This document shows, piece by piece, positions 12,590-41,088 of a stretch of 64,000 nucleotides of DNA. A program made the translations under genes and the position numbers. The stretch is taken from contig NIVC01003989.1 of assembly GCA_002269645.1 (NCBI GenBank), forward strand, positions 2,146-66,145. The letters are read 5' to 3'. The number at the start of each line of letters is the position of its first letter. Positions within the stretch are counted from its first letter, which is position 1. The notes below the pieces were generated by a model. The model did no database searches, was not told the origin of the DNA, and was given only the letters and a program-made list of their open reading frames with translations. This stretch comes from Macrostomum lignano. Lineage: Eukaryota.

Positions 12590-12830
12590 ACATCCCAAGA
12601 CAGCAAGCATCCCCCCTCCTCCCAGATAGCAAGCACCCCCAGATAGCAAGCACCCCCAGATAGCAAGCACCCCCAGATAGCAAGCACCCCCAGATAGCAA
12701 GCACTCCCAGATAGCAAGCACCCCCAGATAGCAAGCACCCCCAGATAGCAAGCATCACTCAGATAGCAAGCACCCCAGATAGAAAGAACCCCCAGATAGC
12801 AAGTATCTATCCTTAAATAGCAAGCATCCA
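12590..12830. repeat. 16-17 bp minisatellite (CCCCAGATAGCAAGCA) near the 3' end of Helitron B
   Basis: Direct tandem repeat; the same unit is expanded at 37.1-37.9 kb. Confidence 0.9.
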
Positions 12831-12879
12831 CCAGACAAAAAGTATATAGTGCAACATTTCCTTTTAGCTTTCTAGGGGC

Positions 12880-15800: not shown

Positions 15801-18800
15801 AATGTTTTACATGGTGGTTCTTTAATGTTCTACATTGTGGCTCTTTAATGTTCTACATTGTGGCTCTTAAATGTTCAACATGGTGGCTCTTTATTGTTTG
15901 ACATAGTGGCTCTTTTATGCTTGAAATGGTGGCTCTTTAATGTTCGACATTGTGGCTCCTTTATGTTTAACATGGTGCTCTTAAATGTTCGACATCGTGG
16001 CTCTTTAATGTTTGACATGGTGGCTCTTTAGTGTTTAACATGGAGTCACGTATGTGTTTAACATGGAGTCACGTATGTGTTTGACATGGAGTCACGTATA
16101 TATTTGGCATGGAGTCACGTATATGCTTTACATGGTGGCTCTTCTATGTTTGACATAGTGGCTCTTTAATGTTTGACATGGTGGCTCTTTAGTGTTTAAC
16201 ATGGAGTCACGTATGTGTTTGACATGGAGTCACGTATATATTTGGCATGGAGTCACGTATATGCTTTACATGGTGGCTCTTCTATGTTTGACATAGTGGC
16301 TCTTTAATGTTTGACATGGTGGCTCTTTAATGTTTGACATGGTGGCTCTTTTATGTTTGACATGATGGCTCTTTAATGTTCGACATGGTGGCTGTAAATT
16401 GTTTGTTATGTAGTCATATGTATATGTTTTACATGGTGGCTCTTTATGTGTGACATGGAGTCACGTATATATTTGACATGGAGTCACATATATGTTTAAC
16501 ATGGTGGCTCTTTAGTGTTCGATATGGTGGCTCTTTAATGTTTGACATGGTGGCTTTTAATGTTCGACATGGTGGCGCTTTAATGTTAGACAGTGAGTCA
16601 CGTATATGTTTGACATGGTGGCTCTTTAATGTTTGACATGGTGGCTCTTTAGTGTTTAACATGGAGTCACGTATGTGTTTGACATGGAGTCACGTATATA
16701 TTTGGCATGGAGTCACGTATATGCTTTACATGGTGGCTCTTCTATGTTTGACATAGTGGCTCTTTAATGTTTGACATGGTGGCTCTTTAATGTTTGACAT
16801 GGTGGCTCTTTTATGTTTGACATGATGGCTCTTTAATGTTCGACATGGTGGCTGTTTAATGTTTGTTATGTAGTTATATGTACATGTTTTACATGGTGGC
16901 TCTTTTGTGTGTGACATGGAGTCACGTATATATTTGACATGGAGTCACATATATGTTTGACATGGTGGCTCTTTAGTGTTCGATATGGTGGCTCTTTAAT
17001 GTTTGACATGGTGGCTTTTAATGTTCGACATGGTGGCTCTTTAATGTTTGACATGGTGGCTCTTTAATGTTTGACATAGTGGCTCTTTAATATCTGACAT
17101 GGTGGCTCTTTAATGTTTGACATGGTGGCTCGTTTATGTTTGACATGGTGGCTCTTTAGTGTTTGACATGGTGGCTCGTTTATGTTCGACATGGTGGCTC
17201 TTTAGTGTTTGACATGGCTCTTTAATGTTTGACATGTTGGCTCTTTTATGCTTGACATGGTGGCTCTTTAATGTTCGACATGGTGGCTCTTTTATGTTTG
17301 ACATGGTGGCTCTTTTATGCTTGACATGGTGGCTCTTTAATGTTTGACATAAAGTCACTTATATGTTTTGCATGGTGCCTCTTAAATATTAGACATGGTG
17401 GCTCGTTTAGGTTTGACATGTTGGCTCTTTTATGTTCGACATGGTGGCTCTTTTTTTTTCTACATGGTAACTCTTTTATGTTTGATACGGTGGCTTTTTA
17501 ATATCTGACATGGTGGCTCTTCTATGTTTGAAATTTGGCTCTTCTATGTTTGACATGGTGGATCTTTAATGTACGACATAATGGCTCGTTTATGTTCGAC
17601 ATGGTGGCTCTTTAATGTTTGACATGGTAGCTCTGATATGTTCGACATGGTGGCTCTTTTAGGTTTGACATGGTGGCTCTTAAATGTTTCACATGATGGC
17701 TCTTAAATGTCTTACATGGTGGCTCTTTTATGTTTGACAATGTGGCTCTTTAATGTTTTACATGGCGGCTCTTTTATGTTCGAAATGGTGGCTCTTTAAT
17801 GTTCGACATGGTGGCTCCTTTATGTTTAACATGGTGCTCTTAAATGTTCGACATCGTGGCTCTTTAATGTTTGACATGGTGGCTCTTTAGTGTTTAACAT
17901 GGAGTCACGTATGTGTTTGACATGGAGTCACGTATATATTTGGCATGGAGTCACGTATATGCTTTACATGGTGGCTCTTCTATGTTTGACATAGTGGCTC
18001 TTTAATGTTTGACATGGTGGCTCTTTAATGTTTGACATGGTGGCTCTTTTATGTTTGACATGATGGCTCTTTAATGTTCGACATGGTGGCTGTTTAATGT
18101 TTGTTATGTAGTCATATGTATATGTTTTACATGGTGGCTCTTTTGTGTGTGACATGGAGTCACGTATATATTTGACATGGAGTCACATATATGTTTGACA
18201 TGGTGGCTCTTTAGTGTTCGATATGGTGGCTCTTTAATGTTTGACATGGTGGCTTTTAATGTTCGACATGGTGGCTCTTTAATGTTAGACAGTGAGTCAC
18301 GTATATGTTTGACATGGTGGCTCTTTAATGTTTGACATGGTGGCTCTTTAATGTTTGACATGGTGGCTTTTAATGTTCGATATGGTGGCTCTTTAATGTT
18401 TGACATGGTGGCTTTTAATTTTCGACATGGTGGCTCTTTAATGTTTGACATGGTGGCTCTTTAATGTTTGACATAGTGGCTCTTTAATATCTGACATGGT
18501 GGCTCTTTAATGTTTGACATGGTGGCTCGTTTATGTTCGACATGGTGGCTCTTTAGTGTTTGACATGGCTCTTTAATGTTTGACATGTTGGCTCTTTTAT
18601 GCTTGACATGGTGGCTCTTTAATGTTCGACATGGTGGCTCTTTTATGTTTGACATGGTGGCTCTTTTATGCTTGACATGGTGGCTCTTTAATGTTTGACA
18701 TAAAGTCACTTATATGTTTTGCATGGTGCCTCTTAAATATTAGACATGGTGGCTCGTTTAGGTTTGACATGTTGGCTCTTTTATGTTCGACATGGTGGCT

Positions 18801-19500
18801 CTTTTTTGTTCTACATGGTAACTCTTTTATGTTTGATACGGTGGCTTTTTAATATCTGACATGGTGGCTCTTCTATGTTTGAAATTTGGCTCTTCTATGT
18901 TTGACATGGTGGATCTTTAATGTACGACATAATGGCTCGTTTATGTTCGACATGGTGGCTCTTTAATGTTTGACATGGTAGCTCTGATATGTTCGACATG
19001 GTGGCTCTTTTAGGTTTGACATGGTGGCTCTTAAATGTTTCACATGATGGCTCTTAAATGTCTTACATGGTGGCTCTTTTATGTTTGACAATGTGGCTCT
19101 TTAATGTTTTACATGGCGGCTCTTTTATGTTCGAAATGGTGGCTCTTTAATGTTCGACATGGTGGCTCCTTTATGTTTAACATGGTGCTCTTAAATGTTC
19201 GACATCGTGGCTCTTTAATGTTTAACATGGAGTCACGTATGTGTTTAACATGGAGTCACGTATGTGTTTGACATGGAGTCACGTATATATTTGGCATGGA
19301 GTCACGTATATGCTTTACATGGTGGCTCTTCTATGTTTGACATAGTGGCTCTTTAATGTTTGACATGGTGGCTCTTTAATTTTCGAAATGGTGGCTGTTT
19401 TATGTTTGACAAGGTGGCTCTTTTATGTTCGACATGGTGGTTCTTTAATGTTCGACATGGTGGCTCCTTTAGGTTTGACATGGTGGCTCTTCTATTGCGC
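12880..19500. repeat. ~6.6 kb satellite array, 23-bp monomer (GACATGGTGGCTCTTTAATGTTT, variant GACATGGAGTCACGTATATATTT), with higher-order duplications
   Basis: Monomer spacing is 23 nt. A diagnostic variant GCATGGTGCCTCTTAAATATTAG recurs at 14937, 17370 and 18721. Confidence 0.95.
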
Positions 19501-22500
19501 TTTTTTTATGTTTAGCAGTTTTTTTGATTTTAAGGTGTTTTAATAAAAAAATTATTTTGCGCTTCTAAGATTCGAACCCAGGTCGCTACATTAGCATTCC
19601 AGTCTGTTCGCATCAGGGCTATCTCTTTTCAATTGGAGAACATGAATTGTGGCCCTTATAATTCAATTCTTACAGCAAGTCAATTGGAGTAAAAAGTTAT
19701 GACATAATCAATTTCTCAGTCAGCCAGTATCAGTCTCACTTCAAGTTAGCAATATGGTTACGCAATTTAAATCATGTCGTATGTGCATTTCTTCGGCACT
19801 GTTTTCAACTTGTTGTGATGCAATCTTTATCACAATCGGAATTCAGTCTGTCAGTTTTTTCTCTAGCATTCTTACATTGCATTTCAAGTCGAAAATTTGG
19901 CTTGACCTTTGCAAAAAAGCGTGTTTTTTCGAATATTTAATCCCTTTAACATTGAGCAATTTCTTAGTCAAGATGCATGTACTGTGCCAGGAAATTTTCT
20001 GATCGAATGGTGCAAGTTTGAAGAAAATCGGTTGAGCCATTTTTTCTGAAATCAATCGCATACCCATATACATACATACATACAGACAACTCATTTTTAG
20101 TATATAGACTAGCTAAAGTTTTGCCCCCCTTCGGGGAGCAGAAATAATTAATATTCGTCTAATATAATATACCTTTTAGCAGGAGTACTTTAAGTGTCTT
20201 TCTTAAGCTTAAGCTTAAAATAGGAATTTTTGGAGATCGTTAATAACGCATTTTAGGTAAAACAAAACTATCAACTTTTTACAGTTTTTTAGTTTAGAGC
20301 CCTGTATATGTCAACGTGTTTGATAAAAATTATTTTATTTATTTAGTTTATAAAACTGTTGAGATCACTTTTTTAGTTGTTACTGAAAATAAATTAAATA
20401 ATATTCCAAGAAATTGCGACTTTCCGAGAAATGACTTGCTTTATTCCGATTTTCTTGTTGCTTGTATTGCTCATGTGTACTACAGTTTTATACACATCCC
20501 GAGAAATTTTTTACTTTCTTCATTTGTAAGTGAATTTCTTAGCCCTGCTCATCGTACTAACTGCGACTGCAATGTTCCGAACAATAAGTAGCTCAGCATT
20601 GCAACTATTGCCCTTGAATGAGGCCCCTCTTATTATAATAAATGACTTAAAGAGTCAGTTCAATGCAGCTATCTCATTGTGAATGGACTTTGCAAAAGCA
20701 ACTGGAGCTACATCCTTCGACCTTTGGTTTGACACTTTTAATAAAGCTAACATTGGCTATATATAGGCATGATATATGATATATATTATCATGCTAAATT
20801 CCCCCTTTCTTTTCTAGTCACACTCCTCAGCAGACTTCTCTTTTCTTATATGCCTCATTCACATTGTCAAATCTTATTTTGAATCAAATCCTATATGACA
20901 TAAAAGTCTATTTCAAATTAGATCCATTTTGATAGTTCAAAATGGTTAGCTCATATCAATGGCTAATTAAATATCAATGGATCAATTTCTAATCTCCTTT
21001 CTTTTTCTTAATGATTCCAGTTCTGATCAGATCCTATTTCTCATCTGACCTCTTTTCTTAGTAATCCATTTTGTATCATTCTTCATTTTAAATGCATGCC
21101 TGACAATTTATCTTTTAAAATAGAATAAGGCAGGTACCAGGTGTGCAGATTCATGAATCATGGGACTGGTCTTTGTCCACTGAAACATTTTTTGTATTTC
21201 TTCAATTGCAAAACACATTGAAAACAACAAAACAACAACAATTGAGTGAGCATCTGGCAAAATTATTATTATACAAATACATATCATTATGACATTATAA
21301 GAAAACAAACTCCAAATGTAGAGAATTCAGCGATTTTCCTCTTTCGTTTGTTAAATTATTTTTTCGACAGAAACAAGTTGTGACTACTGAGTAATGTCAG
21401 AAAACGACAGTAATGGGACAGTAATGGGATTCAGTTCAATGAAAAAAGAAAAAATTGCATTGCACCTAAAAATATTACCCACAAACAGTAAACATGATGC
21501 ACTTGCAGAAGGCTCCGCCAACAAGACAGTATCATTGCACAGTTCATTGCATTTGACTGCAAGAATAATGGTGTCAATCCTACTGCTTGTTGGCTTGCTT
21601 TACTCTGCACTGCTGGTCAGAGGCATTCACTGGGGCAAGTTAAGTTCACGCACTCAACGTCACACAAAAAGCTTAGCTATCACAAGTCTCTAGGTTTGCT
21701 GAAGCTGCTTCAAACCTCTCTCTCATGGCTGCATACCCTCAGTTTTAGAGTGGAAGAACCTCTGAATCGTGAAAAAGCAGCGAACACGTTATTTCAACCA
21801 CAATCTCAAGGCCCATTGATATGCAGCCAACCTGCTATATATTCACCTAATATTTACCTACATTAATTTCACTATTACTTATTAACTTTCATGGCACAAC
21901 TAAATTGGGATCCGATTGTATCCGATCCTATTCTGGTTTGCCTTGATCCCAATCTAGTTATGCAATGATCTCAATCTAGTTATGAAAGGATCTCAATTTA
22001 GTTATGCAATAATCCCATTTTAGTTACGCCAAATGATCCCAATTACGCTAAGCAATGATCTTAGTTCTGTTATGCAATGAACCCAATTAGGCTAAGCAAT
22101 GATCTCACTTCTGTTATGCCACAAACACAATTTAGCTAAGCAATGATCTCACTTCTGTTATGCCACAAACACAATTTAGCTATTGGGTTGGGAACCCAAT
22201 TGGCTATTGGGAACCCAATCCGATCCTATTCTGGTTTGCCTTGATCCCAACTCGTAGCAGAAAATTTTCATTACCTTACGGACGCCCCTCTTACTAATCA
22301 TAATTCTGGTAAACTATGAATCCAATTTTCCATTCTTCAATGATCCCATTCGTATCATGCCATGAGCCCAATTTCATTATGCGATAATTCCAATTCTGGT
22401 TTGCTATGATCCCAATTTAGTATGCAAGGATCCCAACTTAGTTATGCCAAATGATCCCAATTACGCTAAGCAATGATCTTAGTTCTGTTATGCAATGAAC

Positions 22501-22722
22501 CCAATTAGGCTAAGCAATGATCTCACTTCTGTTATGCCACAAACACAATTTAGCTAAGCAATGATCTCACTTCTGTTATGCCACAAACACAATTTAGCTA
22601 AGCAATGATTTAGGATTGATATATAAGATTCTGTGAATTTACCCAATTGGAATAAATGTTGAAAACCCGCGGACGCGCGCTTTAGAATAGAGTCAAATTA
22701 TTTTCCCGCGCTTTAGGATTAT

Positions 22723-23028
22723 TAGAGATGTCCCAAAAGAGCAGTTTCCTCAAAATAAAAATTCGTTAACTTTCCAAACTCAAAATTGAAATTTTCCGAA
22801 ATCAAAATGCAGAAAAACAAAGTTTAGTATGACCAATACTCACTTTTTACATTCGATTTACTGTTTATGCAAAATGAAATACATGTATATGTAGCAGAAA
22901 TTGGTATATATTTAGTGATTTTTTAGACGCTTCCAAATTTTGACTTCTAATTTTATTCAAAATTGAAATTTGCTCTTAAAAAAATTCTAATTTTGGAAAA
23001 TTCAAATTGAAATTTCGGAACATCTCTA
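22723..23028. mobile_element. Putative MITE (TAGAGATG termini, hAT-like)
   Basis: Inverted termini TAGAGATGTCCC / GGAACATCTCTA. Flanking 8-mers AGGATTAT and AGCTTTAT match 6/8. The segment is absent from the duplicated block at 27.5 kb. Confidence 0.45.
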
Positions 23029-23234
23029 AGCTTTATAAATTATAAGTGTATAGGCCCCTTCCACAGAGGTATTAGATGACCCATTTCCATGCATATTTAT
23101 TTGCTAGAACAGCAGCCAGCAAGAAAAGGCAGCGCACGCAGGCGCTGCGCGCCTGTGCGCACGCCGCGCTTTAGAACAATTTCAAAAGTGCGCCGGACGC
23201 CGTCCACGGATTTACAACTTTTTCCTATAGGGTG

Positions 23235-23605
23235 AATTTAGGATTGGGATCTAAGAGATTCTATGAATTTAGGATTGGGATCTAAGAGATTCTATGAATT
23301 TAGGATTGGGATTTAAGAGATTCTATGAATTTAGGATTGGAATCTAATAGATTCTGTGAATTTAGCATTGGGATCTAAGAGATTCTGTGAATTTAGGATT
23401 GGGATCTAAGAGATTCTAAGAATTTAGCATTGGGATCTAAGAGATTCTATGAATTTAGGATTGGGATCTAAGAGATTCTGTGAATTTAGGATTGGGATCT
23501 AAGAGATCCATGAATTTAGGATTGGGATCTAAGAGATTCTATGAATTTAGGATTGGGATCTAAGAGATTCTGTGAATTTAGGATTGGGATCTAAGAGATT
23601 CTGTG
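23235..23605. repeat. 31-bp minisatellite (GAATTTAGGATTGGGATCTAAGAGATTCTAT), ~12 units
   Basis: Direct tandem repeat. Confidence 0.92.
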
Positions 23606-23999
23606 AACCCAATGAACAAGCAATGAACCCAATTTAGCTAAGCAATGCTCTCAGTTCTGTAATGCCATAAACCCAATTTAACTAAGCAATGATCTCAGTT
23701 CTGTTATGCAATGAACCCAATTTCGCTAAGCAATGATCTCAGTTCTGTTATGCAATGAACACAATTTAGCTAATCATTTTGCTTAGCTAATCACTGATCC
23801 CAATTCCATTATGATCCCATCTAATTTTAATTTATTAGGTGAATAAAGCAGGATTTACCTGATACGTCTCATCGGGCCGTATTATACATATCAGGTTAAA
23901 CTACTTGTGATGGCTATCGAACTCAGATGCGCTACTGGCAGACAAAAATGCACTCAAGCATTACTCACGTTAATTGCATCTTTATTAGTCTTTCAAGTC

Positions 24000-25408
24000 C
24001 TACTCGTCCATGAAATAATGTGATGGCCCAGGCTTCTCGGACACATTGGGAGCCTTAGGGGTTGACATAGCGGGGATCTGCTGACTTCTGTTGATATGAT
24101 CTCGGGAAAATGTCACCTGTGAAATGAAATTTATATATGAATTTAATCAATTTTTTATATTCATATTACTCTTGAATGAATGAATAAACCTAATCTTTAG
24201 AGATAAGAGGCCTCATTGAACAAGTTAATAATGAATCTAAGCAGTCAATCACTTATTGCTTCTTTAGTACGTTCTCTGACACCATATTTCTATTTAACCC
24301 ACACGTAATACTCGTAAAATCAACTTACCTCTTTGTCCCCAAATCGCACTTTAATTCTTCGCACCTCATCGAATTGGTCGAACATTCGCTCTGGGTACTG
24401 TAATACCATTTCGTCGTCACGGTTAGCATATTTCTCCCGCTGGGAGCTTTGCGTCACCCGTAGCTCCTCGAAGCACTGTTGGCTAGAAAGCGCATCCTTG
24501 TACCACTGGGTAATGTCGGAGACATCAGCAGAGTCTTCTGGCCAATGCTGAATTTCCGCTTTCGAACATCCGAGACTGATTGTCTGGGAATATTCCTGGA
24601 CTTGAGCACCATGAATCGCTAGAACGTCGCCCACAGACCAGTCATTCACTTGGGCAGTAGAGCTGGCCCAAAATGTGCACGACACGGAGGACCCAGACTG
24701 ATCAACAAGCGTCACTTTCGCCAGGTTGATAAGTTTTCCGGAACCGGTTTTAACTTCCGTTGGTTTCTGGACAGCAGAAATCGTGCCATAGACGTTAACA
24801 TTCCTGAGATATGTGAGGCAAAGGGTGAACTTACAAGAATGCATTAACTCATTCACTAAGCAACTTCACTGACTGATTTAAATAAGTTTCCCTAGAAATA
24901 ATTGGCTAACCTAACATTTAGTGGGAATATATATTCCAAATCCTTTCCATTTTATTTTTAACAATTGCAACAAGTTAACTTACATTTTCATTTCACAGTC
25001 CGAAATCTCTTTTATCTTCTTATAGCTTGGTGCACGTCGAGTGACGGTCTCGAGGGTCCTCACAATGGTTCCACGTTGGTCAATTGAAACTGTTAGCTCG
25101 TGCTCATTGTCCGTAGTGCTGTATTTGGGATCCGCCTTCTTCACCCAGCCGCCGGATATGCGGACGGCGACGCCCTCACGACACACCTCCAGGAAAGGCT
25201 TAAGATCCTTTCCGAACACGCTTACACGTATATCGCCGGTGTCGTCACAGAGGATAAAGGAAAACACTTGGCCTGGTCCTCTTTTGCCTTCAAAGTCCGT
25301 GATTTTGGACAGCCTCATTACGAGGCCAACGATTGCAGCGTGCATCAGGCCCGGAAGCAGAGCAGAGATACACGCTTTGCTTTTCTTGGCTCCTTCGGTT
25401 GACTCCAT
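24000..25408 (-). CDS. RPA70-like ssDNA-binding protein, two OB folds, intact (338 aa; exons 25408-24984, 24803-24329, 24116-24000)
   Basis: GQVFSFILCDDTGDIRVSVFG, KKADPKYSTTDNEHEL, VDQSGSSVSCTFW, LAIHGAQVQEY. Exons total 1017 nt in frame with canonical GT-AG sites, and intron positions match copy 1. Confidence 0.9.
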
Positions 25409-25599
25409 ATTGCTCGATTGATAGTTGCCAAAAATATGGATTATAAAAATTTCACTGATAAGGTCTTTACGGTTTGTGGTTTGATAGTTTTAGCATCAAG
25501 GCCAATTGTGCCAGTTTATATTGCAGCATTTCGTTTCGGACAACCCTAACTGTGATGACTCATGCCAATAGAGGGTGCCATGTAAAGATCAATTTAGAT

Positions 25600-25990
25600 C
25601 TGGCTAACCAATCAGAGAGAGTTTTGTTCTAATCCACCCACTGGGCTACTTGTTGTGGATTGGCTGGTGATTGCCTTAGCTTTTACGTTCTTTCTTTATG
25701 TACACTGTGTGGGGTGTCAGAGTCGAGTGTGGTGCGACTTGTTATGCAATCTGTTTTCGACACACTTCAATAATAGGACACAAAAAATATCTTAAATGTA
25801 CACTGTAATTGGGAAGCCAGTGCGGCGTGTGGCTAACGTGGCTAAAAATAGAGGGTTTCAAGTCAGCCAATAGCAGTAAACTTTGTATTCAACTAAAGTG
25901 ATTTCATTAAACTGCCAGTGCAAGCCCCAACCTAGTGCGACTTTTCAGTAATCACAAACAGCTAAAGCCTCATGACGCTCACCAATGAAG
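25600..25990. promoter_or_regulatory. Putative bidirectional CCAAT-box promoter between RPA-like 2 and knuckle gene 2
   Basis: CCAAT/ATTGG at about 25608, 25659, 25866 and 25982, between divergent genes. Confidence 0.45.
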
Positions 25991-26225
25991 CCTCACACGA
26001 TTTTAACTGGGGTTGGGGGTGGCCCTAAGCTGGTATTCATTTTTGCCTAAGCTGAAACGGGCTTTAAAAAAATGAAATGAGTTTCATTTCCTTAGCAAGG
26101 TTTTCAAACCAATCTCGCTAATCCTTGCTTGACATGAGTGAGCGTATATAAACCAGAGTGAGCGTACGACACGCTCGTATAATTTCCACTGTATAGTTCC
26201 ACTGTTTAACTCCACTGTTCCACAA

Positions 26226-26467
26226 ATGAAGTTTACCCAGAACTTCTTTTCCGGCGGCGGCAGGCGGCGAGGAGGCCGCGGTGGTGGACACCCTAGAAAA
26301 CCTAGTAAGTCTCATTTCTAAGTCTCATTACTGTAATTAAGTCTTTCGAAACCACCTGTTGAGTAAAATTGCACTTTCCAAACTTAACAGTGGCCTGTTA
26401 TCTCTGCGGTGGAGGTCACCCTGTGGCCCGGTGTCCGGACCTGGCCGACATGCGGCTGCAGCAGCAG

Positions 26468-26511
<44 letters not shown>

Positions 26512-26515
26512 GCAA

Positions 26516-26550
<35 letters not shown>

Positions 26551-26581
26551 GCCGCAGCAGCAGCAGCAGCGGAATAATTAA
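26226..26581 (+). CDS. Small spliced RGG-box, CCHC zinc-knuckle, poly-Q protein (89 aa; exons 26226-26304 and 26391-26581)
   Basis: MKFTQNFFSGGGRRRGGRGGGHPRKP, a phase-1 intron (A|GTAAGT...TTAACAG|), then MACYLCGGGHPVARCPDLADMRL(Q)n..RNN*, a Cx2Cx3Hx4C knuckle. The spliced length of 270 nt is in frame. Confidence 0.72.
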
Positions 26582-26955
26582 ATTCAATTTGTTTGTGGAA
26601 TTAACTTGATATGATTTCTTGATTTTTTTATTTATGTGTTTGAGAATTTAAAGAATTCTAAATAAATAAAATAAATAATTCTGTTTACTGAATAAATAAG
26701 TGTTTCGTGTTGCTTTTTCTTACTCCTAAATGAAAATAAGAAACTTAACTGACACAGCTCATTGCTATGATCAATTTAGAACCTAAAATGAAGTTTTGGA
26801 GCTTAATTGAAAGTTTTTAACTAAACAAACATCCATATGAAAGTATGCAAAATAACATATTATAAATAAGGGAATTCAATGACAACTGATGAGTTTAATA
26901 ATTGCTTTGTGAATACTTACTTACAAAGACAGTAGAGATGATGAATTCGCAGATT

Positions 26956-28960
26956 GCTCCGCCAACAAGACAGTATCATTGCACAGTTCATTGCATTTGA
27001 CTGCAAGAATAATGGTGTCAATCCTACTGCTTGTTGGCTTGCTTTACTCTGCACTGCTGGTCAGAGGCATTCACTGGGGCAAGTTAAGTTCACGCACTCA
27101 ACGTCACACAAAAAGCTTAGCTATCACAAGTCTCTAGGTTTGCTGAAGCTGCTTCAAACCTCTCTCTCATGGCTGCATACCCTCAGTTTTAGAGTGGAAG
27201 AACCTCTGAATCGTGAAAAAGCAGCGAACACGTTATTTCAACCACAATCTCAAGGCCCATTGATATGCAGCCAACCTGCTATATATTCACCTAATATTTA
27301 CCTACATTAATTTCACTATTACTTATTAACTTTCATGGCACAACTAAATTGGGATCCGATTGTATCCGATCCTATTCTGGTTTGCCTTGATCCCAATTTA
27401 GTATGCAAGGATCCCAACTTAGTTATGCCAAATGATCCCAATTACGCTAAGCAATGATCTTAGTTCTGTTATGCAATGAACCCAATTAGGCTAAGCAATG
27501 ATCTAGGATTGATATATAAGATTCTGTGAATTTAGGATTGGGATCTAAGAGATTCTATGAATTTAGGATTGGGATCTAAGAGATTCTATGAATTTAGGAT
27601 TGGGATTTAAGAGATTCTATGAATTTAGGATTGGAATCTAATAGATTCTGTGAATTTAGCATTGGGATCTAAGAGATTCTGTGAATTTAGGATTGGGATC
27701 TAAGAGATTCTATGAATTTAGGATTGGGATCTAAGAGATTCTAAGAATTTAGGATTGGGATATAAGAGATTCTATGAATTTAGGATTGGGATCTAAGAGA
27801 TTCTCTGAATTTAGCATTGGGATCTAAGAGATTCTGTGAATTTAGGATTGGGATCTAAGAGATTCTAAGAATTTAGCATTGGGATCTAAGAGATTCTATG
27901 AATTTAGGATTGGGATCTAAGAGATTCTGTGAATTTAGGATTGTGATCTAAGAGATCCCATGAATTTAGGATTGGGATCTAAGAGATTCTATGAATTTAG
28001 GATTGGGATCTAAGAGATCCCATGAATTTAGGATTGGGATCTAAGAGACTCTGTGAATTTAGGATTGGGATCTAAGAGATTCTATGAATTTAGGATTGGG
28101 ATCTAATAGATTCAATGAGATTAGGATTGGGATCTAAGAGATTCAATGAATTTAGGATTGGGATATAAGAGATTCTGTGAATTTAGGATTGGGATCTAAG
28201 AGATTCTGTGAATTTAGGATTGGGATCTAAGAGATTCTGTGAATTTAGGATTGGGATCTAAGAGATTCAATGAATTTAGGATTGGGATCTAAGAGATTCT
28301 ATGAGATTAGGATTGGGATCTAAGAGATTCTATGAGATTAGGATTGGGATCTAAGAGATTCTATGAATTTAGGATTGGGATATAAGAGATTCTATGAATT
28401 TAGGATTGGGATCTAAGAGATTCTGTGAATTTAGGATTGGGATCTAAGAGATTCTATGAATTTAGGATTGGGATCAAAGAGATTCTGTGAATTTAGGATT
28501 GGGATCTAAGAGATTCTATGAATTTAGGATTGGGATATAAGAGATTCTATGAATTTAGGATTGGGATCTAAGAGATTCTGTGAATTTAGGATTGGGATTC
28601 AAGAGATTCTATGAATTTAGGATTGGAATCTAAGAGATTCTGTGAATTTAGCATTGGGATCTAAGAGATTCTATGAATTTAGCATTGGGATCTAAGAGAT
28701 TCTATGAATTTAGGATTGGGATCTGTTATGCTCAGTTCTGTTATGCAATGAACCCAATTTAGCTAATCATTTTGCCTAGGTAATCCCTGATCTCAATTCC
28801 ATTATGATCCCATCTAATTTGAATTTATTAGGTGAATAAAGCAGGATTTGCCTGATATGTCTCAGCGGGCCATTTACATATCAGGATAAACTACTTGTGA
28901 TCACTATTAAACACAGATACCAATGCGACACTCACAGACAAAATGACACAAGTAATACTC
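26956..28960. repeat. Copy 2 of the internal direct repeat block (3' of RepHel 2), including a ~1.2 kb 31-bp minisatellite at 27525-28722
   Basis: Same components and order as 21512-23965. Confidence 0.85.
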
Positions 28961-28984
28961 ACTTCAATGACGCCTGGAAATCGC

Positions 28985-31900
28985 CTAATCTCCAGTGAGC
29001 ACTTCTGGATACACCACGTTTCTGGTCTTGGTGCCACAGATCCGGACGCGAACATTCGCGGCGTTCTTCGCCCGTGACAGCGCCGTGTACAGCTGACCAT
29101 GAGTGAAGCAACCGACAGCCAGGTCAACTCCAACGGTCTCCAGGGATTGTCCTTGTGCTTTGTGTATTGTAAGGCAGAAGCTCGGCTTCACCGGAAACTG
29201 CAGCCGCTTGAAACTCACTGGTAGATCCGCATTGTTTGGAATCAGCGGAATTCGCGGCAGCAGGATCTCGTCTCCAGTGAACTGACCGGCGGCAATCTTG
29301 CAGCGCAGCACATTATCGCCCATCGTGAGAACGATGAGCCGTGTACCGTTGCACAGCCGCGGCGGGTTGATATTCCGAAGAAGCACCAGCGGCATGCCCA
29401 CCTTGATCCTGAGCAGATAAGTTGGAAAATTCGGGGCATCCAGCTGGTTTAGCAACTCTGTCGGGAAATGCGTAGCGGCCTCCTCATCAGCCAGGCTGTC
29501 TACAGAGCGATACTCTCGCAGGCAACCCGGGAAAATGCCCAGACACGTCTCGTTGATGGCATCAACAGAGTCGTTGTACGGCGCCAGTATCGCTCGACTT
29601 GCAAAATAGTCGTCCCGCTCCGCTGATTCTTCAAACGACGGGTACACGAACTTGATCAGGTCATTCAGCGGAGCCTCTGCAGAAATCACCATCTCAGCGG
29701 GAAGGGACACCTTCTCCTCAGCATCCTGCTCGATTGTCCCGGTTCCGATCTGTGAAAAGAAAAGCAATAAAAACATGAAACATAATATTCGCAATGATTC
29801 GCGAGAAAAAATGATTTTTACACCCCATTCTCACCTGCATGAGTAGCTCCGTGAACTTCTGGTACATCGCTGGCTCGGAGCTGCACAGCAGACGAATGTT
29901 TCTCGTCAAGCGATGTCGCTTGAAAAGTTTCCACAGCGAAGATCTGCAGACACACGCCATGACGCTGTTGGCGCGGGTTCCATTCACTACGACAGGCAGG
30001 AGCTGGCGGAAGTCACCGGAACACACCAGAGTGACTCCTCCAAATGGCTTGTCCTGCTTCCGAACGTCTCGCAGACACCTGTCCACGGATTCCAGATCCT
30101 TTCGATTGGTCATGGAGATCTCGTCCCAGACAATCAGCCGAACTCTACGAAACACTTCCGCTTGCTTGGACTGCGCGCCAACAGCGCAGACATCCTTGTT
30201 GGATCGGAGCAGCCGGACTGGGATCTTGAACCTAGAGTGAAGTTGTCATAGGTAGAATCGATTAGAAACGCGACTCTAAAATTCAGAAGCATTCCCCTAA
30301 TCTAAAAAACTTACGTGGAATGCGCAGTCTGTCCGCCTGGCAGCAGAGTCGCTGCGATTCCAGACGCCGCAACTGCCAGGGCGAGTTCACCGCGGCTGCG
30401 CACAAAGGCCAGCAAAACCTCCAGCAGGAAGGTCTTGCCAGTGCCAGCGGGCGCGTCCAGGAAGTGCAAACCGCCCGAGCCGGCCACAAGATCCGCAGTC
30501 ACCGACTCGTACACCGCAATCTGCTCCTCCGTCAGCATTGACAGTCTCGCTTCCCGGATCTCGGCCTGTTCAACCGGGTCGAACTGCATCGGTCCGACTT
30601 GAGGCGGCACGGAGGCCGCAGGCAAGCCGTACTCGGGCAGGCTGTGACCGCCCATGGAGGTCAGCATGCTCTGCAGCTCGCGCAGCGCCAGGTCGGTGAT
30701 TTCCTCAGCGCTCAGATCTCGGTGGTGAAACCGCAGGTCCTCGCACAGATCCTCGGCGAATGTGCACCACAGATCGCTGCCATCCTCAGGGTTGCCCCAA
30801 ATCAGAATGACAGCCAGCAGGTGCCTGAGAGCTCTCGGCATTCGCGACTGGACTGCCTCGGCTAGGCAGCGCCGCCAGTGGTCGTCTCGTTGCAGCAGAC
30901 CCAGGGCCGTGCAAGCAGCCTTGGCGCTGGGACACAGCACTCCGTCCACAGTGTGCAGCGCCTCGAAGCTGGTTGGCCCTCTAACCTGCAGGAGGAGCAT
31001 TCGCATATAAAACAGATCCCCTGCTCTCGGACTCACCGTGTACATTCGGGCAATGTTCGTGTTGTGCACAACACCAGGGTGGCCCTCAACTCTCGAACCC
31101 TTCTTGGCGCGGCGCCACTCCCTCTCGCTGTGGTGCCACACGAAGTAGGACGGCACCTCGGTGTACACCAGGCCTCTAGCGAATTCATCAGTGCGGCACA
31201 GCTTGAAGAAAGCCGTCAGCGTCGAATCTCTGGGCGCCCTGGCCTTTGTGCTCGCATTTTGCTCGTTGAAATACACGAGCTGCTCGTTAGACTTGTGCAC
31301 GCACAATCGGATCACAGCCGGAAATCTGTTGTGCACCTGTTGTGTTTTAGTTTAAAAACCATATCATTATTTTCCCATTCTTTGCTCCTAGCACTGCCTT
31401 GCAAACATCTATGACTTACTTCAAAGCCCAAGATGGTATTCACGGCTTCCATTGGGCCTATGTAGCGCGCCAGCAGATACTCCTTGATCTCATTTCGCCC
31501 CTCCTTCTTGGCTTGAGTCGGAGCCTTGCTAGCTGAACCTTCCTGTCGTTCGCCATCCGCAGCCTGCTCTCCTGGCCCGCTCGGCTTCTTGTTTGCCTCG
31601 AACTTGAACGACGCCATGTCGCCGCCTTTTAGCAAGTACTTGATCACGTACTTGACCGACTTGACGGTGGCACAAACTTCAAAGTTCATGTGGCATTCGA
31701 AAAGGAGCAGCAGGCCCGGGTTGTATGGTACAACCGACCTGTATTTGTGCCAGGAAAAGAATTGCTAATTAATGATTTATGTATTCTAGCAATGGTAAAT
31801 TAAACTTACAGTAAATAAACAATTTAGCAATATAAATAAACTAAACACAAGGCTAAACTAAGTACTTTGCTTTCGTATTAAAGAATCAACCTTTCAATCA

Positions 31901-34900
31901 AGTCTGAAAAAACACCAACACCTCCTCACTCACCTGTTGTCCATGCGAATGCTGCGGCCTTTGAATAGTTTGTCCACCGTAAATCCGCCCATCTCAGGGG
32001 ACAGCCTGCGATACAATGGGTAGCCAGTATCGCTGGTTAGGGTCGCCTGCTGGAACTCCTTCGGGAAGCCCTTGCTGCACTGGCCGTCCACCATGCACGG
32101 GCAGGCTGGATTTACCACGCCGCAGGGGCCATGGATCATGTGAGTCTTCACCAGCTCGTGCAGCCTCGGCTGCTGCTGTGGGTCCGGGATCTCAGCGGAC
32201 ACGATTTTGTCGTAGCGGTCCGGAGTCACTCTCTGTCCACTGACCAGCCAGAGCAGAAAGTGCACATGGGGGAGACCTGTGGAAGACATAAACAAGTGAT
32301 TCAAAGCGACGTATGAGTGATCACAATTTAGTCATGTAAATTAATTAAAATTCTAAACCAGCGTTTGCATCGTAGAGAAAGCGAAGTTTGAATCATGGAG
32401 AAACTGGAGTTTGAATCATGGCTAAACCAGAGCTTAATTCCGGTTTGCAATGACCCCTTGCATAAAAATATGGATTGCTAAACCTGGAATGCAATTACAG
32501 AATGAAAATTGAAAGCGCAATTTGCTAACTTACCGCGCTTCTGATATTCCAGAGAGCAAACATGCGCGGCCTCCTTTCCAAAGCGCTTCCTCAGCTCGGC
32601 AAGCAGAGCCTTCTTCTTCAGCTCGAAAACACGCGTGACAATATCCGGCCGGTCCTCAGGTCGCTGTCCAGGCAGCAGCTGTGCACTGATTTCCGGCCAC
32701 TTAGGGTTGCACGTCGCCGTGACAAACAGGTCCGGCTTGCCAAACTTTTGTACATAGGTCATGGCGTCTTGCAGCCTCTCCATCAGGTACCTTGGCCCGC
32801 CAACGAAGCTGGAGGACAGGAACACGTGCGCAGGCTTGCCAATATCAGTCGGATTTGTGTCGGTCGACCTGCCATCAGCAGCGAATAGAGCGTCTCGCAG
32901 ACCGCTGTACGTCTCACTGCGCAGATCGCTCTGATGGGTCCGCAGATAGAGCAGCCTCTCTGACTCAATCTTGGCGCACATGTCCACCAGGTACTGCTGG
33001 AACAGCCGCCGTCCGTGGTGCAGCAGGCTGCTATGGCCCGCTCGCACCATGATTTCGCTGGCATAGTACTTCATCGGCGTCAGCTTGCGGCCATTGCTCA
33101 TGCGCAGCTCCGGGTGCCAGCCGTCCTCGCCATGGGGGAACAGCAACACGTACTCCAGTGCATCATACGATCGGTGCGTTTTGCTAATCCTCTTGTAGCC
33201 GCCACCCCGCAGTTGAATGACAACATCTCGGCTAGTTGCTGGCTCATCACCGTCTTCAGGGGCCTCAGTGTCCTCAGTGTCCTTAACAATGAGGATGCCG
33301 ACCTCGTTTGCCGTGGGCAAATTGTAGCGCCTGATTTTGAACGGTAGTAACAAATGCTTTTAACAAAACTCTTTACAACGGTAAACATTCCTGTGTACAC
33401 AGGCACAAAGCTTTAAAAGACAGGTTTTAAAATGTGTTCGAATCCCTTTTCAGTTATTGTTAGCTCACCGAATGTGTTCCCAGAAGGTCTTCGGTCCGGG
33501 TGAATCACGATTCGCGCATCCACAAGCTCCGGATCCTCCATGATCCGCTGTGCTGCAGCCTTCAGGCTCCGAACGTAAAGGTTGCACTCGTGAAGCAACG
33601 TCTGTAGCAGCTCATGTAGCTCTGGCTTCACCCTATCGCTCAGACTCTGCTGGCTTTCGAGTTCGCGGTCAGTGAAGTACACCTGCCAGCCGCGAGGAAC
33701 AGCAGACGCTTCAGCAAACAGCGGCATAGCAGTGTGGTGCAGCTGACCGCTGATGATGTAGCTGGGATTCCAGCCTGGCACCAACCGCGGCTTGGCACTC
33801 AGCGAGGTCAGGTGCAGCACAGAGTTGTAGCTCCGGATGTTGGTCAGGAACTCTGAGCTCATGCCATGCCGGCCCATGTACAGGTCAGCCAGCAGCTGTG
33901 GCACAGTCCGGGTGGGCAGCTTCACCTTGCCGCCAGCACAGCAGAAATTGCCTGTCTCCATGCGGAACAGCTTGGCACCGCAATGGTTGCATGCCCAGTC
34001 CATTGGCCCGCAGTCATGGGCTGGAGCTTCTGGCCTCGCCATCGTCTCAGGCCTGATAATAAAAATGGAATGTATCTCTTAGTAACTGTTAAATGTAAAT
34101 GTAACTGTTCATTGTGTGTCAGTTTACCTTGCAGTAGCGGGTCCGTCTTCAGCGCGGCCCGCAGTCTCATGTTCCGCCGGCATCGCGCTGGGGCCCTTGG
34201 CCTTTTTGGCCCTCTTGGCAGGAGTTCTGCTTGCTGCCAGGCTTGGGAACTCAGCATCTGTAAAGGCTTGCAAAAGCTCTCGAAGTCTCAGTGACTCGTA
34301 ATGTTCATGGCGCAAAAGCACACGCACAATGGCATTAGGAGGGCGCAAATTAGCCCTGAAATATTGCATCACACTACCATTGGCCTGGTAAATGACCAGA
34401 TCCACATCAAAGCAGCGGCTCAACAAAGAGGCAACTTCATCTGAAACATAAATTCCTGCTTGAAAAGAGGAATTCACGATCTCATCAGCACTCTCAGGTG
34501 CAATGAGGCCATCTGCAATCAGCTGTGGCATGAGTTCTGCAACACGGCAAGACAAGTCCTGCCGCAGGGAGGCTGCGTCAGTTTCCAGCGGGGTTCCACG
34601 CAGCTGATCACACACAGCATAAAAAAAGCAATTGCCATCACCAACAATGGGGATTACCTGCAACTGCTCAAAGGGTACTATAGTTTCTGTACCTTGCTGC
34701 TGGGTGTCCGACCTAAGGGGCAATGGGTGAACGTAAGCACAGCAGCCTTAATTGGCTTTTTAAGACAATTCATTCCTCAAAAATCGTTATCCGCTTAATT
34801 TATACAGAATAAAATAGATACTACAAATTATCCCCTTCAAGGCAATTCAGAAAAAAACAAAAATAAAGACTTGTTATAAAAAGTTACTATACAACTCACC

Positions 34901-35309
34901 TAGAAACCACAGCTCCACGGCAACGAATCCGATCGGCTTCCAGTCGGGCAGCCCACTCTGCCTCAGTCTCAGCCTCTCTGCGCTGAGCGTCCCGCTGCCG
35001 CTGTTCTTCCAGTCGGGCAGCCCACTCTGCCTCAGTCTCAGCATCTCTGCGCTGAGCATTCCGCTGCCGCTGTTCTTCCAGTCGGGCAGCTCGCTCTGCC
35101 TCAGTCTCAGCATGTCTGCGCTGAGCATCCCGCTGCCGCTGTTCTTCCAGTCGGGCATCCCGCTCTGCCTCAGTCTCAGCATGTCTGCGCTGAGCATCCC
35201 GCTGCCGCTGTTCTTCCAGTCGGGCATCCCGCTCTGCCTCGGATTCTGCCTGTCGCCGTCGCTTGGCATCGCGGCTCTTCTTTAAACTGCTGGCGCCGCG
35301 TCGAACCAT
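28985..35309 (-). CDS. Helitron RepHel copy 2: STPR repeats-OTU cysteine protease-Zn finger-HUH Rep-PIF1 (SF1B) helicase, ~1740 aa; exons 35309-34900, 34712-34128, 34052-33469, 33330-32534, 32276-31934, 31738-31420, 31336-30315, 30231-29835, 29749-28985; one -1 frameshift at 33479-33481
   Basis: All 8 introns are GT-AG and phase-compatible once one G is restored in TCT GGG(G) AAC (copy 1 has four Gs: PSGEHIR). Motifs: 23-aa ETEAERDARL repeats; GDGNCFF...HEHYESL; CNHC...CCAGG; FVTATCNP; EYQKRGLPHVH; YVIKY; APAGTGKT; WDEISM; GDFRQLLPVV; LCNGTRL; TIHKAQGQSL; HGQLYTALSR. No endonuclease domain. Confidence 0.95.
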
Positions 35310-35794
35310 GATTGAGAAATGAGAAGTGAAATGAAATTAGTTCAGAAAGAATGATATGGTTTGAAAGATGAAAGTTTGTGAATTTGGATGTCTGAAGAAT
35401 CAGATAAGGTGCCCTTGAGCCAAACTATTACAGGCTATTTATCATCCAGTGGGCTGAATTGGAGCTTATCTTAAGACGCAGGGTAGAAACTGAAAAATCG
35501 ATAAAGAAGAAAGGGGTCTAAATCTAAAAAACCTATGATTTGGGGTGTGGGCTCTCCAGGCCCGTGTGTCCAAATTCCGGGGCAGAGGGCTCACAATGTA
35601 CACTGGTCTGCGCCAGCCAGTGAAAAAAACTGTGAATGTAATCTATTTATGACTGTCTCGCCAGTGGGGTTGATACAGCTATGTACTTTTGACATAGTGA
35701 AATTCTTATCAGAGTTACCAGTATCACTGATATCAGTGATATCATCAATATCAGTGATAATCAGTATCACTTTTAACAAAACTGGTTTTGCAAT

Positions 35795-36295
35795 GATTCA
35801 AACTCTGGTTTAGCCATGATTCAAACTCTGGTTTAGCCATGAGTCAGACTCTCGTTTAGCCATGATTCAAACTCTGGTTTTGCCATGATTCAAACTTTGG
35901 TTTAGCCATGATTCAAACTCTGGTTTAGTCATGATTCAAACGATGGTTTAGCCATGACTTAAACTCTGGTTTAGCCATGATTCAAACAATGGTTTAGCCA
36001 TGATTCAAACACTGGTTTTAGCCATGATTCAGACTCTGGTTTAGCCATGATTCAGACTCTGGTTTAGCCATGATTCAGACTCTGGTTTAGCCATGATTCA
36101 GACTCTGGTTTAGCCATGATTCAGACTCTGGTTTAGCCATGATTCAGACTCTGGTTTAGCCATGATTCAAACACTGGTTTTAGCCATGATTCAGACTCTG
36201 GTTTAGCCATGATTTAAACTCTGGTTTAGCCATGATTCAGACTCTGGTTTAGCCATGATTTAAACTCTGGTTTAGTCTGATTCAAGCTCTATTTT
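35795..36295. repeat. 23-bp minisatellite (AGCCATGATTCAGACTCTGGTTT), ~21 units, upstream of RepHel 2
   Basis: Direct tandem repeat with 23-nt period. Confidence 0.92.
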
Positions 36296-36975
36296 TGCAA
36301 TGATTCAAAGTCAGATAATATTTTATTTACGAAGTGAATGAAAAAAATAAATTTAAATAATCTTCAATCACTACTGGCTGAAATTTGACGCAGTGCAGAA
36401 TCGAACCCTAGCCGAGCCTATAACCAATTCCTAGTGCCTACACATCGGCTATTCCATCATCTACAGTAGCAGTCCAGTCTGTTCGCATCTTTCTTGGCTA
36501 TCTCTTTTCAATTGGAGAACATGAATTGTGGCCCTTATAATTCAATTCTTACAGCAAGTCAATTGGAGTAAAAAATTATGACATAATCAATTTCTCAGTC
36601 AGCCAGAATCAGTCTCAATTTAAGTTGGCAATATGGTTACGCAATTTCATTCAAGTTTTGTGTGCATTTGTTCGGCACTGTTTTCAACTTGTTGTGATGC
36701 AATCTTTATCACAATCGGAATTCAGTCAGTCAGTTTTTTCTCTAGCATTCTTACAATGCATTTCAGGTCGAAAGAGCTGCTTGACCTTTGCAAAAAATCA
36801 TGTTTTTCGAATATTTAATCCCTTTAACATTGAGCAATTTCTTAGCCAATATGCATGTACCGTCCCGGGAAAATTTCTGATCGAATGGTGCAAGTTTGAA
36901 GAAAATCGGTTGAGCCGTTCGGGAGAAAATCAATTACAAGCAAGCAACCAAGCATTTCATTTTTAGTATATTAGA

Positions 36976-39113: not shown

Positions 39114-40239
39114 ATGAAAATTCTTGATGTAAGAAATTGCACGAAGCTAACGACTCCCTTGCGGGGAAAAATTCTGGTTCGGAATGAGGTGAGCTGCACT
39201 TTTAGTTTCTTCGCTTACTTTTGCACAATAGTCAATTAAATGCACAATAGTCAAGAAAACAATACTACTGTAATTTGTAGGTGAAAATCAACTCAAAAAT
39301 TTTTCCTGACCCCACATTTGTTTAGATTCGGTCCTACTCAAACCGTAGTGGCCCCGGCACTTTGTTCTCGGCCCTTCTGATCGACGAGACAGCTGAGATC
39401 AAAGTGTGTTTTTTCGGACGTAACCTTAACGATTCGTGGCAGAAGTGTACCGAGGGGAACGCTGTAAACCTTCACGGCGTTGAAGTGAAGACAGCGGATC
39501 AGCGCTACAACTTTGCTGAGAACCTTTTCGAGCTAAATGTCAATGTCGACAAAGGTGGTTTCGTTGAAGAAGCGGAAGACTTCGTGTGTTCACCGCACTA
39601 CAGATTCCACCCGATATCAGAGCTAGCCACAATCGGGACTAATGGGTGAGAATTCTTATGTCAAAATTATATTCTTATGTCTATATCTATAACTCTATCT
39701 ATCTATCCATCTATCCATCTATCCGTCTATCCATCTAGCTATCTATCCACTTCTCAATATGTCTTACCCATTTATCTATTCAAGATTTGACTTTGAACCC
39801 CATTTCTGATCCTAGCGTTCGCGTCGACTTGCTGGGGGTAGTAATATCGACTGCTGGTCCGACCGACGTCCAGACAAGAAATGGTCCTACGCAAAGGACT
39901 GGCGTTGTCTTGGCAGACAACAGTGACCGTACAGTCCTCTGTACGTTCTGGGGACGGCGAGCCGTTCAGGTGTCCTCGTGGCACATCAATTCTATTGTGG
40001 CAATCAAGGGGGCGTGAACAAGTGACTACGATGTCCTCTCGCTTAGTTGCTCCTCCGTCTATTGTGTCCTGGATCCCGACGGAGTTGACCTCAGTGAGCT
40101 GCAAAAATGGCGTGAGGAACGAGCAGCCAAAGAATTGATGCCCGTTGCTGCCTCTCGCCAGCCGCAGATCGACGATGCGATTTGCATCGACGTGCCCAGC
40201 AGCGTCAAACGGGTCCGCATCCGTCGGGGAAATATCGAG
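39114..40239 (+). pseudogene. Third, more divergent RPA70-like gene (exons 39114-39188, 39326-39645, 39816-40239; last exon not resolved) with a premature TGA at 40015-40017
   Basis: GKILVRNE|IRSYSNRSGPGTLFSALLIDETAEIKVCFFG; VRVDLLGVV...LADNSDRTVLCTFWG...VAIKGA*TSDY. The frame continues past the stop to KRVRIRRGNIE|GTAAG, as in the paralogs. Confidence 0.8.
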
Positions 40240-41088
40240 GTAAGGCTCAATATTTAACTCAATTCAATTTAGTATGCATGCTCTTCCTGTCATAGCCAAC
40301 AGAACCAGCTTCTTCACAAAACTTACAGAGGACGATCGATCTCAACGATTTGGAGCCACAGAGTTCACAGTGAGTAATCGAATACTTTCATGCCGTTAGA
40401 ATTTGCGTTGCGGGTATCAAGGAGCTACAATATAAAAATTTTAACGAATCACAAATCGTACTTGCAGACAAAGCGACACGTCATTCTCCTCTCAGTGAAC
40501 GATGTACGGCGAACATCGGTGAAGATGTACGATGTACGGTGAAGAGTGAAAGCTGATAATAAAATAAAAGCTGAATAAAAATGTTCTGGATAAGAATATT
40601 GAAATAAAAGCTGAATAAAACTGTTCTGGATAAGACTATTTACCTTCTGTCTATTTCACTTACGTATATCCATCTGTCGTTGTGTCAGCTCATGCCTGTC
40701 TGTCCGTCTATATATAAATTGTACAGCAACAATCATTCCAGTCTCCCCAGAAGTGTAAGATTCTCCCCAGATTAGCACCGCTCCCCAGATTAGTAATGCT
40801 CTCTGCAAATTAGCACATGGGAGGAGACTTCATTATTGTCAAAATTCTGCAGTTCTCCTCCCGGCTGGCTCCTCAGTCTCCTCAGCAAACTTGCAATAGT
40901 CCTTTTATCTATTTAAAAATTTCTCAGCATTTAGTACGACTCACTAATCAGTACTCGATACATAACTACACCAATATCTTATCTATTCTATATCTATATC
41001 TATACTCGATCATAGGATTTAGCTATGCCTTCAGCAGTTTAGCAGTATTGTCTGCAGTTTAGCAATTTCATGCTTAAATGCAGGCAAC

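Follow-up and report, generated by a model that had tools for sequence, protein, structure and literature searches.

A two-exon CCHC zinc-knuckle gene carried by two diverged Helitrons of Macrostomum lignano

Introduction

Do small zinc-knuckle genes that are too finely split to be seen as single open reading frames belong to the Helitrons among which they lie, and do they serve them? The question was raised by a repeat-rich stretch of 64,000 nt from Macrostomum lignano (assembly GCA_002269645.1, contig NIVC01003989.1, positions 2,146 to 66,145; hereafter the window, in whose numbering positions are given). An earlier note, made from these letters alone, had described three copies of a hidden gene for a CCHC-knuckle and poly-Q protein and had tied them to Helitrons. 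We mapped the ends of the transposons, re-derived the three genes (copies 1, 2 and 3) and searched for their relatives; the gene itself was sampled in one genome, that of M. lignano.

Results

Three split genes have a single knuckle and a common intron position

Across the six frames of the window, the motif C-x2-C-x3/4-H-x4-C has three matches, all at the three noted loci. Dinucleotide shuffling, done 200 times, gave 0.42 matches on average, and two of the shuffles also reached three. The donor sequence GTAAGT is present at 23 sites on the two strands; three of these lie 90-200 nt 5´ of the three knuckles, on the correct strand and in the correct phase, and the remainder are mostly in introns of the RepHel and RPA-like genes. 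In each copy, the predicted phase-1 intron before the knuckle runs from a perfect GTAAGT donor to an ACAG acceptor, and the intron is separated from the first Cys by 2 residues in copies 1 and 3 and by 1 residue in copy 2. All three loci thus read as the earlier note had described them, with no single ORF and a phase-1 intron just ahead of the knuckle (Table 1).

Joining the exons of each copy reproduced the module orders given in that note, including the side on which poly-Q lies and the RS or RGG nature of the basic module. Copy 1 reads PY-rich stretch, poly-Q, basic stretch, canonical C-x2-C-x4-H-x4-C knuckle and (RS)5; copy 2 reads RGG box, C-x2-C-x3-H-x4-C knuckle and poly-Q; and copy 3 reads poly-Q, basic stretch, phase-1 intron, knuckle and an Ala/Thr-rich tail. 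Every gene encodes one knuckle, and an RS tract is found in one of the three, with RGG and poly-Q instead in copy 2 and no RS in copy 3. The product is therefore a protein of 89-154 aa with one CCHC knuckle, arginine-rich flanks (RGG, R-rich or RS) and a stretch of poly-Q. In copies 1 and 2 the start is the first ATG after a TATA box, with no further ATG between the two in copy 2. No start codon could be identified in copy 3, which has one premature stop and nested retrotransposon insertions on its 5´ side.

Table 1. Positions of the knuckle genes, their signals and partners, and the surrounding elements in the window
Feature	Position	Strand	Remarks
Autonomous Helitron H1	1..12454	-	5´ TC at 12454; 3´ CTAG 1.9 kb left of window
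Copy 1 AATAAA signal	28..33	-	~120 nt past stop codon
Knuckle gene copy 1	150..749	-	154 aa, intact; predicted exon 1 749-401, phase-1 intron 400-266, exon 2 265-150
Copy 1-RPA 1 intergenic region	750..1666		Presumed divergent promoter
Copy 1 TATA box	840..845	-	~90 nt upstream of ATG
RPA-like gene 1 (OB folds)	1667..3315	+	Publicly annotated as 293-370 aa protein
RepHel 1 coding blocks	6123..11323	-	Helitron_like_N, PIF1
Non-autonomous Helitron N1	12455..20108	-	Head-to-tail with H1 and H2
Autonomous Helitron H2	20109..36974	-	16.9 kb; 5´ TC at 36974; hairpin and CTAG end at 20109
RPA-like gene 2	24317..25408	-	Exons 1-2 25408-24984, 24803-24329; extends downstream
RPA 2-copy 2 intergenic region	25409..26225		Presumed divergent promoter
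Copy 2 TATA box	26145..26152	+	~75 nt upstream of ATG
Knuckle gene copy 2	26226..26581	+	Joined exons one open frame, 89 aa; predicted exon 1 26226-26304, phase-1 intron 26305-26390 (GTAAGT...ACAG), exon 2 26391-26581
Copy 2 AATAAA signals (three)	26661..26696	+	80-115 nt past stop codon
RepHel 2 coding blocks	28985..34723	-	Helitron_like_N, PIF1, Pif1_2B, UvrD_C_2; blocks separated by introns or frameshifts
Third RPA-like gene	39326..40242	+	Distant, 28-36% identity to RPA 2
Knuckle gene copy 3	43642..44217	-	Broken relic; layout and intron phase as in copy 1
Nested non-LTR retrotransposon sequence	44220..47765	-	Abuts poly-Q (5´) side of copy 3

The knuckle resembles multi-knuckle proteins and has no specific relative among the proteins searched

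The description of all three as CCHC knuckles stood for copies 1 and 3, which have the ligand spacing of zf-CCHC (Pfam PF00098), C-x2-C-x4-H-x4-C, but needed qualifying for copy 2, which is one residue short of canonical and has the spacing of the eIF3g knuckle. Because the eIF3g knuckle with this spacing has been solved, the short form in copy 2 need not be defective. Copies 1 and 3 scored 12.8 bits with Pfam zf-CCHC, below the gathering cut-off of 20.8 bits, and copy 2 had no match to this profile. Pfam detected no domain other than the knuckle in the 89-154 aa proteins, and no RRM even at E ≤ 10.

An exhaustive phmmer search of 1.84 billion representative proteins with copy 1 exon 2 gave 42 matches at E ≤ 1e-3 (best 5.5e-9), all of them multi-knuckle proteins with 3-9 matched stretches each, and the significance of these matches comes only from summing many knuckle repeats. 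Ten of ten sampled matches scored above the PF00098 cut-off and, since copy 1 exon 2 matches PF00098 proteins, the knuckle is, judged by sequence, of the genuine CCHC type. The same search of 1.84 billion representatives returned generic multi-knuckle proteins and no specific relative of the knuckle protein. A word-indexed search with the C-terminal half of copy 1 against 5.8 billion proteins yielded nothing at E ≤ 10; no host parent gene was found among these 5.8 billion, the M. lignano proteome included; and by exact look-up the spliced proteins and exon ORFs are absent from a collection of 15 billion proteins that includes transcript-derived assemblies. Among structures in the PDB, the best matches for copy 1 were retroviral nucleocapsid knuckles (E 0.012), with the knuckles of splicing factor SLU7 and uridylyltransferase TUT7 at weak E-values, and the best for copy 2 was the eIF3g knuckle (2mjc), a weak match (E 0.37) with equal spacing. 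No SR protein was among the matches of the protein and PDB searches.

Copies 1 and 2 lie between the termini of autonomous Helitrons

Helitron termini were located by aligning repeated blocks. The 3´ end consists of a CCCC(C)nnnnGGGG(G) hairpin, ~10 nt and CTAG, and abuts a 5´ TC(n)nATATACTAAAAATG at five junctions, where the abutting unit begins TC...ATATACTAAAAATG. Three of the junctions are on the minus strand (12454/12455, 20108/20109 and 36974/36975) and two on the plus strand (48384/48385 and 52121/52122). Since the 3´ CTAG directly abuts the 5´ TC at these junctions, the region is a head-to-tail Helitron array, in the order H1 (from 12454 leftwards), N1 (20108 to 12455), H2 (36974 to 20109) and then N2. 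Two arrays of opposite orientation meet near 38.8-42 kb.

H1 and H2 have the canonical ends of a Helitron, 5´ TC and 3´ CTRR after a short GC-rich hairpin, without terminal inverted repeats, and each encodes a RepHel protein with a Rep (HUH) domain and a PIF1-type helicase (Helitron_like_N E ~4e-46 and PIF1 E ~1e-19, Pfam). The 3´ CTAG of H1 was seen at position 235 of locus L013 and position 6418 of L001, and its terminus was confirmed through an independent insertion, as the H1-type 3´ CTAG is flanked by unrelated DNA in L014; the base after CTAG in the independent flanks of L014 and L002 is T. Read in element sense, H1 encodes RepHel 1, RPA 1 (antisense) and copy 1 (sense), and H2 encodes RepHel 2, copy 2 (antisense) and RPA 2 (sense). 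The proposed tie to Helitrons was borne out by copies 1 and 2, which lie between mapped termini and adjoin an RPA-like gene. In each of two diverged autonomous M. lignano Helitrons there is a compact two-exon knuckle gene that has a TATA box and a poly(A) signal to itself. The stretch with copy 3 is bounded by a minus-strand unit's 5´ end near 42200 on one side and by the plus-strand 3´ end at 48384 on the other.

Several repeats were noted within these units. The knuckle-RPA block of H2 lies between direct repeats of ~2-2.5 kb (21471-23974 and 26912-28968), composed of 31-bp and 22/44-bp satellites that are 83-97% identical; the idea that this block is itself a nested Helitron was set aside, as no extra termini were found inside 20109-36974. 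N1 carries a 6.5 kb satellite (12932-19491; ~286 copies of 23-bp units) flanked by duplicated 5´-terminal blocks, and since this satellite is absent from the near-identical contig L001, it is either collapsed there or polymorphic.

The intact copies are paired head-to-head with RPA-like genes

The distance from ATG to ATG is 918 nt between copy 1 and RPA-like gene 1 and 818 nt between copy 2 and RPA-like gene 2; an exact look-up of the RPA 2 exon ORF found it not on record. The CCAAT-box sequence GATTGGTTAG has only two sites in the window (985-994 and 25604-25613), both in knuckle/RPA intergenic regions, at non-equivalent positions. Relative to RepHel, the knuckle/RPA pair has opposite orientations in H1 and H2. 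RepHel 1 and RepHel 2 are separated by dS 0.8-1.0, with dN/dS ~0.06-0.1, and the two RPA-like genes by dS 1.4-2.2, with dN ~0.26. The inversion of the pair, together with the higher dS of RPA than of RepHel, suggests that H1 and H2 are mosaic elements or have exchanged modules.

The third RPA-like gene is convergent with copy 3, 3.4 kb away, and probably belongs to another Helitron unit. That unit has a Helitron 5´ block (~41930-42200) and no RepHel, and recalls the 'semi-autonomous' RPA-only Helitrons described in rice.

The 5´ side of copy 3 is occupied by retrotransposon sequence

The non-LTR sequence beside copy 3 comprises two GC-rich copies, a long one that encodes RT and RNase H and a 5´-truncated one, each (GA)n-tailed, and it encodes its own C-terminal zinc motif, different from the knuckle. 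A 24-nt string is duplicated on either side of the short copy, and TTAGGG-like repeats are present at the far junction of the insertion (47735-47765) and also at 2163-2222. Tandem repeats of 15/32 bp occupy 47934-48326, just before the plus-strand Helitron 3´ hairpin. The 15-bp repeats at 47934-48205, which contain an NP(H/Y)LK-like frame, were considered as the lost 5´ part of copy 3, an improbable identity given that BLAST was not significant; the faint likeness of this frame to the copy 1 N-terminus is probably coincidence, and arrays of this type are usual for subterminal Helitron repeats.

Integrase zinc-binding and core matches at 58046-59357 (-), together with long GC-rich ORFs at 56-63 kb, suggest an LTR retrotransposon, from which no CCHC motif was found within the window. 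Relaxed motif scans and short-query tblastn of the window and 17 loci revealed no further knuckle relics. One extra motif match in loci L015-L017 was rejected, being outside the element, after a stop and without the Gly-His signature.

The knuckle, the intron position and the signals of the gene persist amid saturated divergence

BLASTP connected copies 1 and 3 at E 6e-6 and copies 1 and 2 at E 0.005 and, with the intron phase and position in common, these values uphold the view that the loci are a family of related small spliced knuckle genes. Identity in the knuckle region amounts to 8/21 and 8/19 residues, of which 4 and 5, respectively, have different codons, the pattern expected under protein-level constraint. 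Outside the knuckle, no alignable DNA was found among the three loci save CAG/CAA (poly-Q) runs, and the introns and flanks of the copies are unalignable. Conservation between copies is limited to the knuckle with the residues that directly follow it and to the position of the intron; the low-complexity modules have been swapped or re-grown.

The poly-Q and PY tracts are repeat DNA, with long ORFs in other frames too. A 9-mer, CCTGGCCGA, is found directly before poly-Q both in exon 1 of copy 1 (578-586) and in exon 2 of copy 2 (26440-26448), in different reading frames, and has 4 occurrences in the window where 0.29 would be expected; its place next to poly-Q may reflect a past shift of the poly-Q module inside the gene.

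That introns and intergenic DNA no longer align shows that unconstrained sequence is saturated at the distance between H1 and H2. The H1 and H2 copies have in common the ATG, consensus splice sites, four ligands and stop, and the open frame of copies 1 and 2 spans 35-36 glutamine codons. We read the persistence of start, splice sites, ligands and frame amid such divergence as retention by selection, and infer that the gene was kept by selection on the element lineage and is not a recent capture; repeat slippage can also renew poly-Q.

A paralogue is an annotated gene, and a sister Helitron family lacks the gene

One locus, L001, duplicates the left 12.5 kb of the window at 99.8%, and two others, L012 and L014, are 97% paralogues. 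All three have copy-1-type genes, in which the RS run numbers 5, 6 or 8 units. The window copy and that of L001, which are near-identical duplicates, are intact; the L014 gene has one frameshift and the L012 gene one 1.2 kb insertion. Exons of the 97%-identical paralogues show no deficit of change, a comparison (within the 97-99.8% set) that is without power as a test of selection because the changes fall in repeat tracts.

The GenBank annotation of the assembly is based on RNA-seq-derived transcripts and TransDecoder ORFs (PMC5730564). In L014, a 115-aa gene is annotated at 8720-9067 on the predicted strand, with the same ATG as copy 1 and the first 36 residues in common with it; the called ORF ends early because this paralogue has the frameshift. 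The presence of this gene in a transcript-based annotation supports transcription, not the splice.

A sister Helitron family (L002, L004 and L015-L017), with RepHel directly followed by an RPA-like gene, lacks the knuckle gene. Its 3´ terminus lies ~600 nt past the RPA-like gene, and it is represented by at least two independent insertions (L002; L015-L017). A sister family that is complete for RepHel and RPA yet has no knuckle gene indicates that not every Helitron of this group requires it, and the gene, absent from some autonomous relatives, is not in the indispensable (core) Helitron set. Nor was it found in three other Helitron loci from M. lignano and other organisms (L003, L009 and L010).

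Discussion

The knuckle gene appears to be a real, Helitron-borne and lineage-specific accessory or passenger with a possible role in the transposon. The best explanation, in which our confidence is about even, is that it is a lineage-specific helper carried by the Helitron and kept by selection on the element lineage. Of the reading in the earlier note, the family and its tie to Helitrons are supported, and the proposed condensate-forming or strand-annealing part in Helitron replication is not. The knuckle and RPA-like genes would be co-expressed from the common 0.8-0.9 kb intergenic region, and the knuckle protein, by analogy with other basic-flanked knuckles, would bind single-stranded nucleic acid, as a helper and not an essential factor. 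Either it might join the RPA-like protein on the single-stranded DNA that arises as an intermediate in rolling-circle transposition, or it might act on the Helitron's intron-containing RNAs. The most specific form of this proposal, a third kind of Helitron-encoded protein that acts as a stand-alone nucleocapsid-like knuckle chaperone, co-expressed with the RPA-like protein and handling transposition ssDNA or RNA, is speculative, and we consider it unlikely.

The main rival is that an ancestral Helitron captured a host CCHC gene or gene fragment that is still transcribed and of no use to the element, its survival owing to hitch-hiking and repeat slippage and not to selection. Gene capture by Helitrons is well documented (PMC6431247), a complete sister family does without the gene, two of the copy-1-type paralogues are broken, and the copies differ in all but ~20 residues. 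This history is possible, and we hold it for less than probable, given that no host parent turned up in 5.8 billion proteins, the M. lignano proteome among them, that start, splice sites, zinc ligands and open frame have been kept in two lineages that are saturated in their neutral DNA, and that both copies have kept the divergent pairing with an RPA-like gene. If the gene does serve the element, its target could be RNA and not the DNA intermediate, as an SR-like or knuckle factor for splicing, export or stability of Helitron transcripts. The (RS)5-8 tract that follows the knuckle at the end of copy 1, the GTAAGT introns in the RepHel and RPA genes of these Helitrons and the weak PDB matches to the SLU7 and TUT7 knuckles all fit such a role. 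It becomes improbable in light of the restriction of RS to one of three copies, with RGG and poly-Q in copy 2, the lack of an RRM or other RNA-processing domain and the lack of a named SR protein among the matches.

Low-complexity DNA could hold open frames by chance, with coincidental knuckles and introns, for poly-Q and PY repeats yield long ORFs in several frames, three motif matches also turned up in 2 of 200 shuffles and the Pfam scores are under the cut-off. We give this view very little credence, as each of the three motif matches comes with a consensus GTAAGT donor in the correct phase, pairwise similarity reaches past the ligands, the knuckle matches genuine knuckle proteins, the intact copies have TATA and poly(A) signals and one paralogue is an annotated gene. 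We find it equally hard to believe that the copies are remnants of Gag nucleocapsid domains, as might be suggested by the retrotransposons in the window and by the retroviral nucleocapsid knuckles that are the best PDB match of copy 1 (E 0.012). Copies 1 and 2 have no adjoining sequence for capsid, protease or RT, an intron is present in every copy along with a separate promoter and stop, the retrotransposon by copy 3 is a nested insertion with a different C-terminal zinc motif, and gag-like sequence is continuous with the knuckle exon in none of the five copies seen.

If the knuckle gene serves the element, a nucleic-acid chaperone would be added to the rolling-circle toolkit, and DNA transposons would have independently evolved a small basic knuckle helper, convergent with the nucleocapsids of retroelements. 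If it is only a passenger, it would show how a tiny spliced gene can last in a transposon even as its disordered tails are built anew, and would be a case of how small spliced genes are missed by annotation. In addition, annotation of the M. lignano genome, which is very rich in repeats, can draw on the clean Helitron termini and tandem junctions of the locus.

Known Helitron accessory genes, present in some lineages, encode RPA-like, OTU and endonuclease proteins (PMC6431247; PMC4683698), and the RPA-like gene, for a single-strand-DNA-binding protein, is found in Helitrons of plants, cnidarians and fish (PMC4683698; PMC6431247). We found no report of a Helitron-borne CCHC or zinc-knuckle gene in the searchable Helitron literature. 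Like the RPA-like accessory gene, the knuckle gene is separate, lies between the termini beside RepHel and is patchy across lineages, and its product is likewise predicted to bind single-stranded nucleic acid; unlike the RPA-like gene, it is far smaller, encodes one CCHC knuckle and disordered tracts without OB folds and has another origin.

Proteins of the CNBP type have both knuckles and an RGG box and are binders of single strands, and SR proteins of the SRSF7 (9G8) type consist of an RRM, a CCHC knuckle and an RS domain. Multi-knuckle proteins of the CNBP/ZCCHC type are the top matches of the exhaustive protein search, but they have 4-9 tandem knuckles, in contrast to one per gene here. 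Copy 1 resembles SRSF7 in that its knuckle is followed directly by a run of RS dipeptides, and differs from it in having no RRM, and the run is missing in copies 2 and 3. With the eIF3g knuckle (PDB 2mjc), copy 2 shares the unusual C-x2-C-x3-H-x4-C spacing, but not the N-terminal region of eIF3g or its RRM. Compared with the nucleocapsids of retroviruses and retrotransposons, which are nucleic-acid chaperones with basic-flanked CCHC knuckles, the knuckle gene is not part of a Gag polyprotein and encodes no capsid domain, has an intron and one knuckle instead of two, and sits in a DNA transposon with RPA-like and RepHel genes, not pol, as neighbors; what it has in common with them is a small protein built from a short CCHC motif and arginine-rich flanks.
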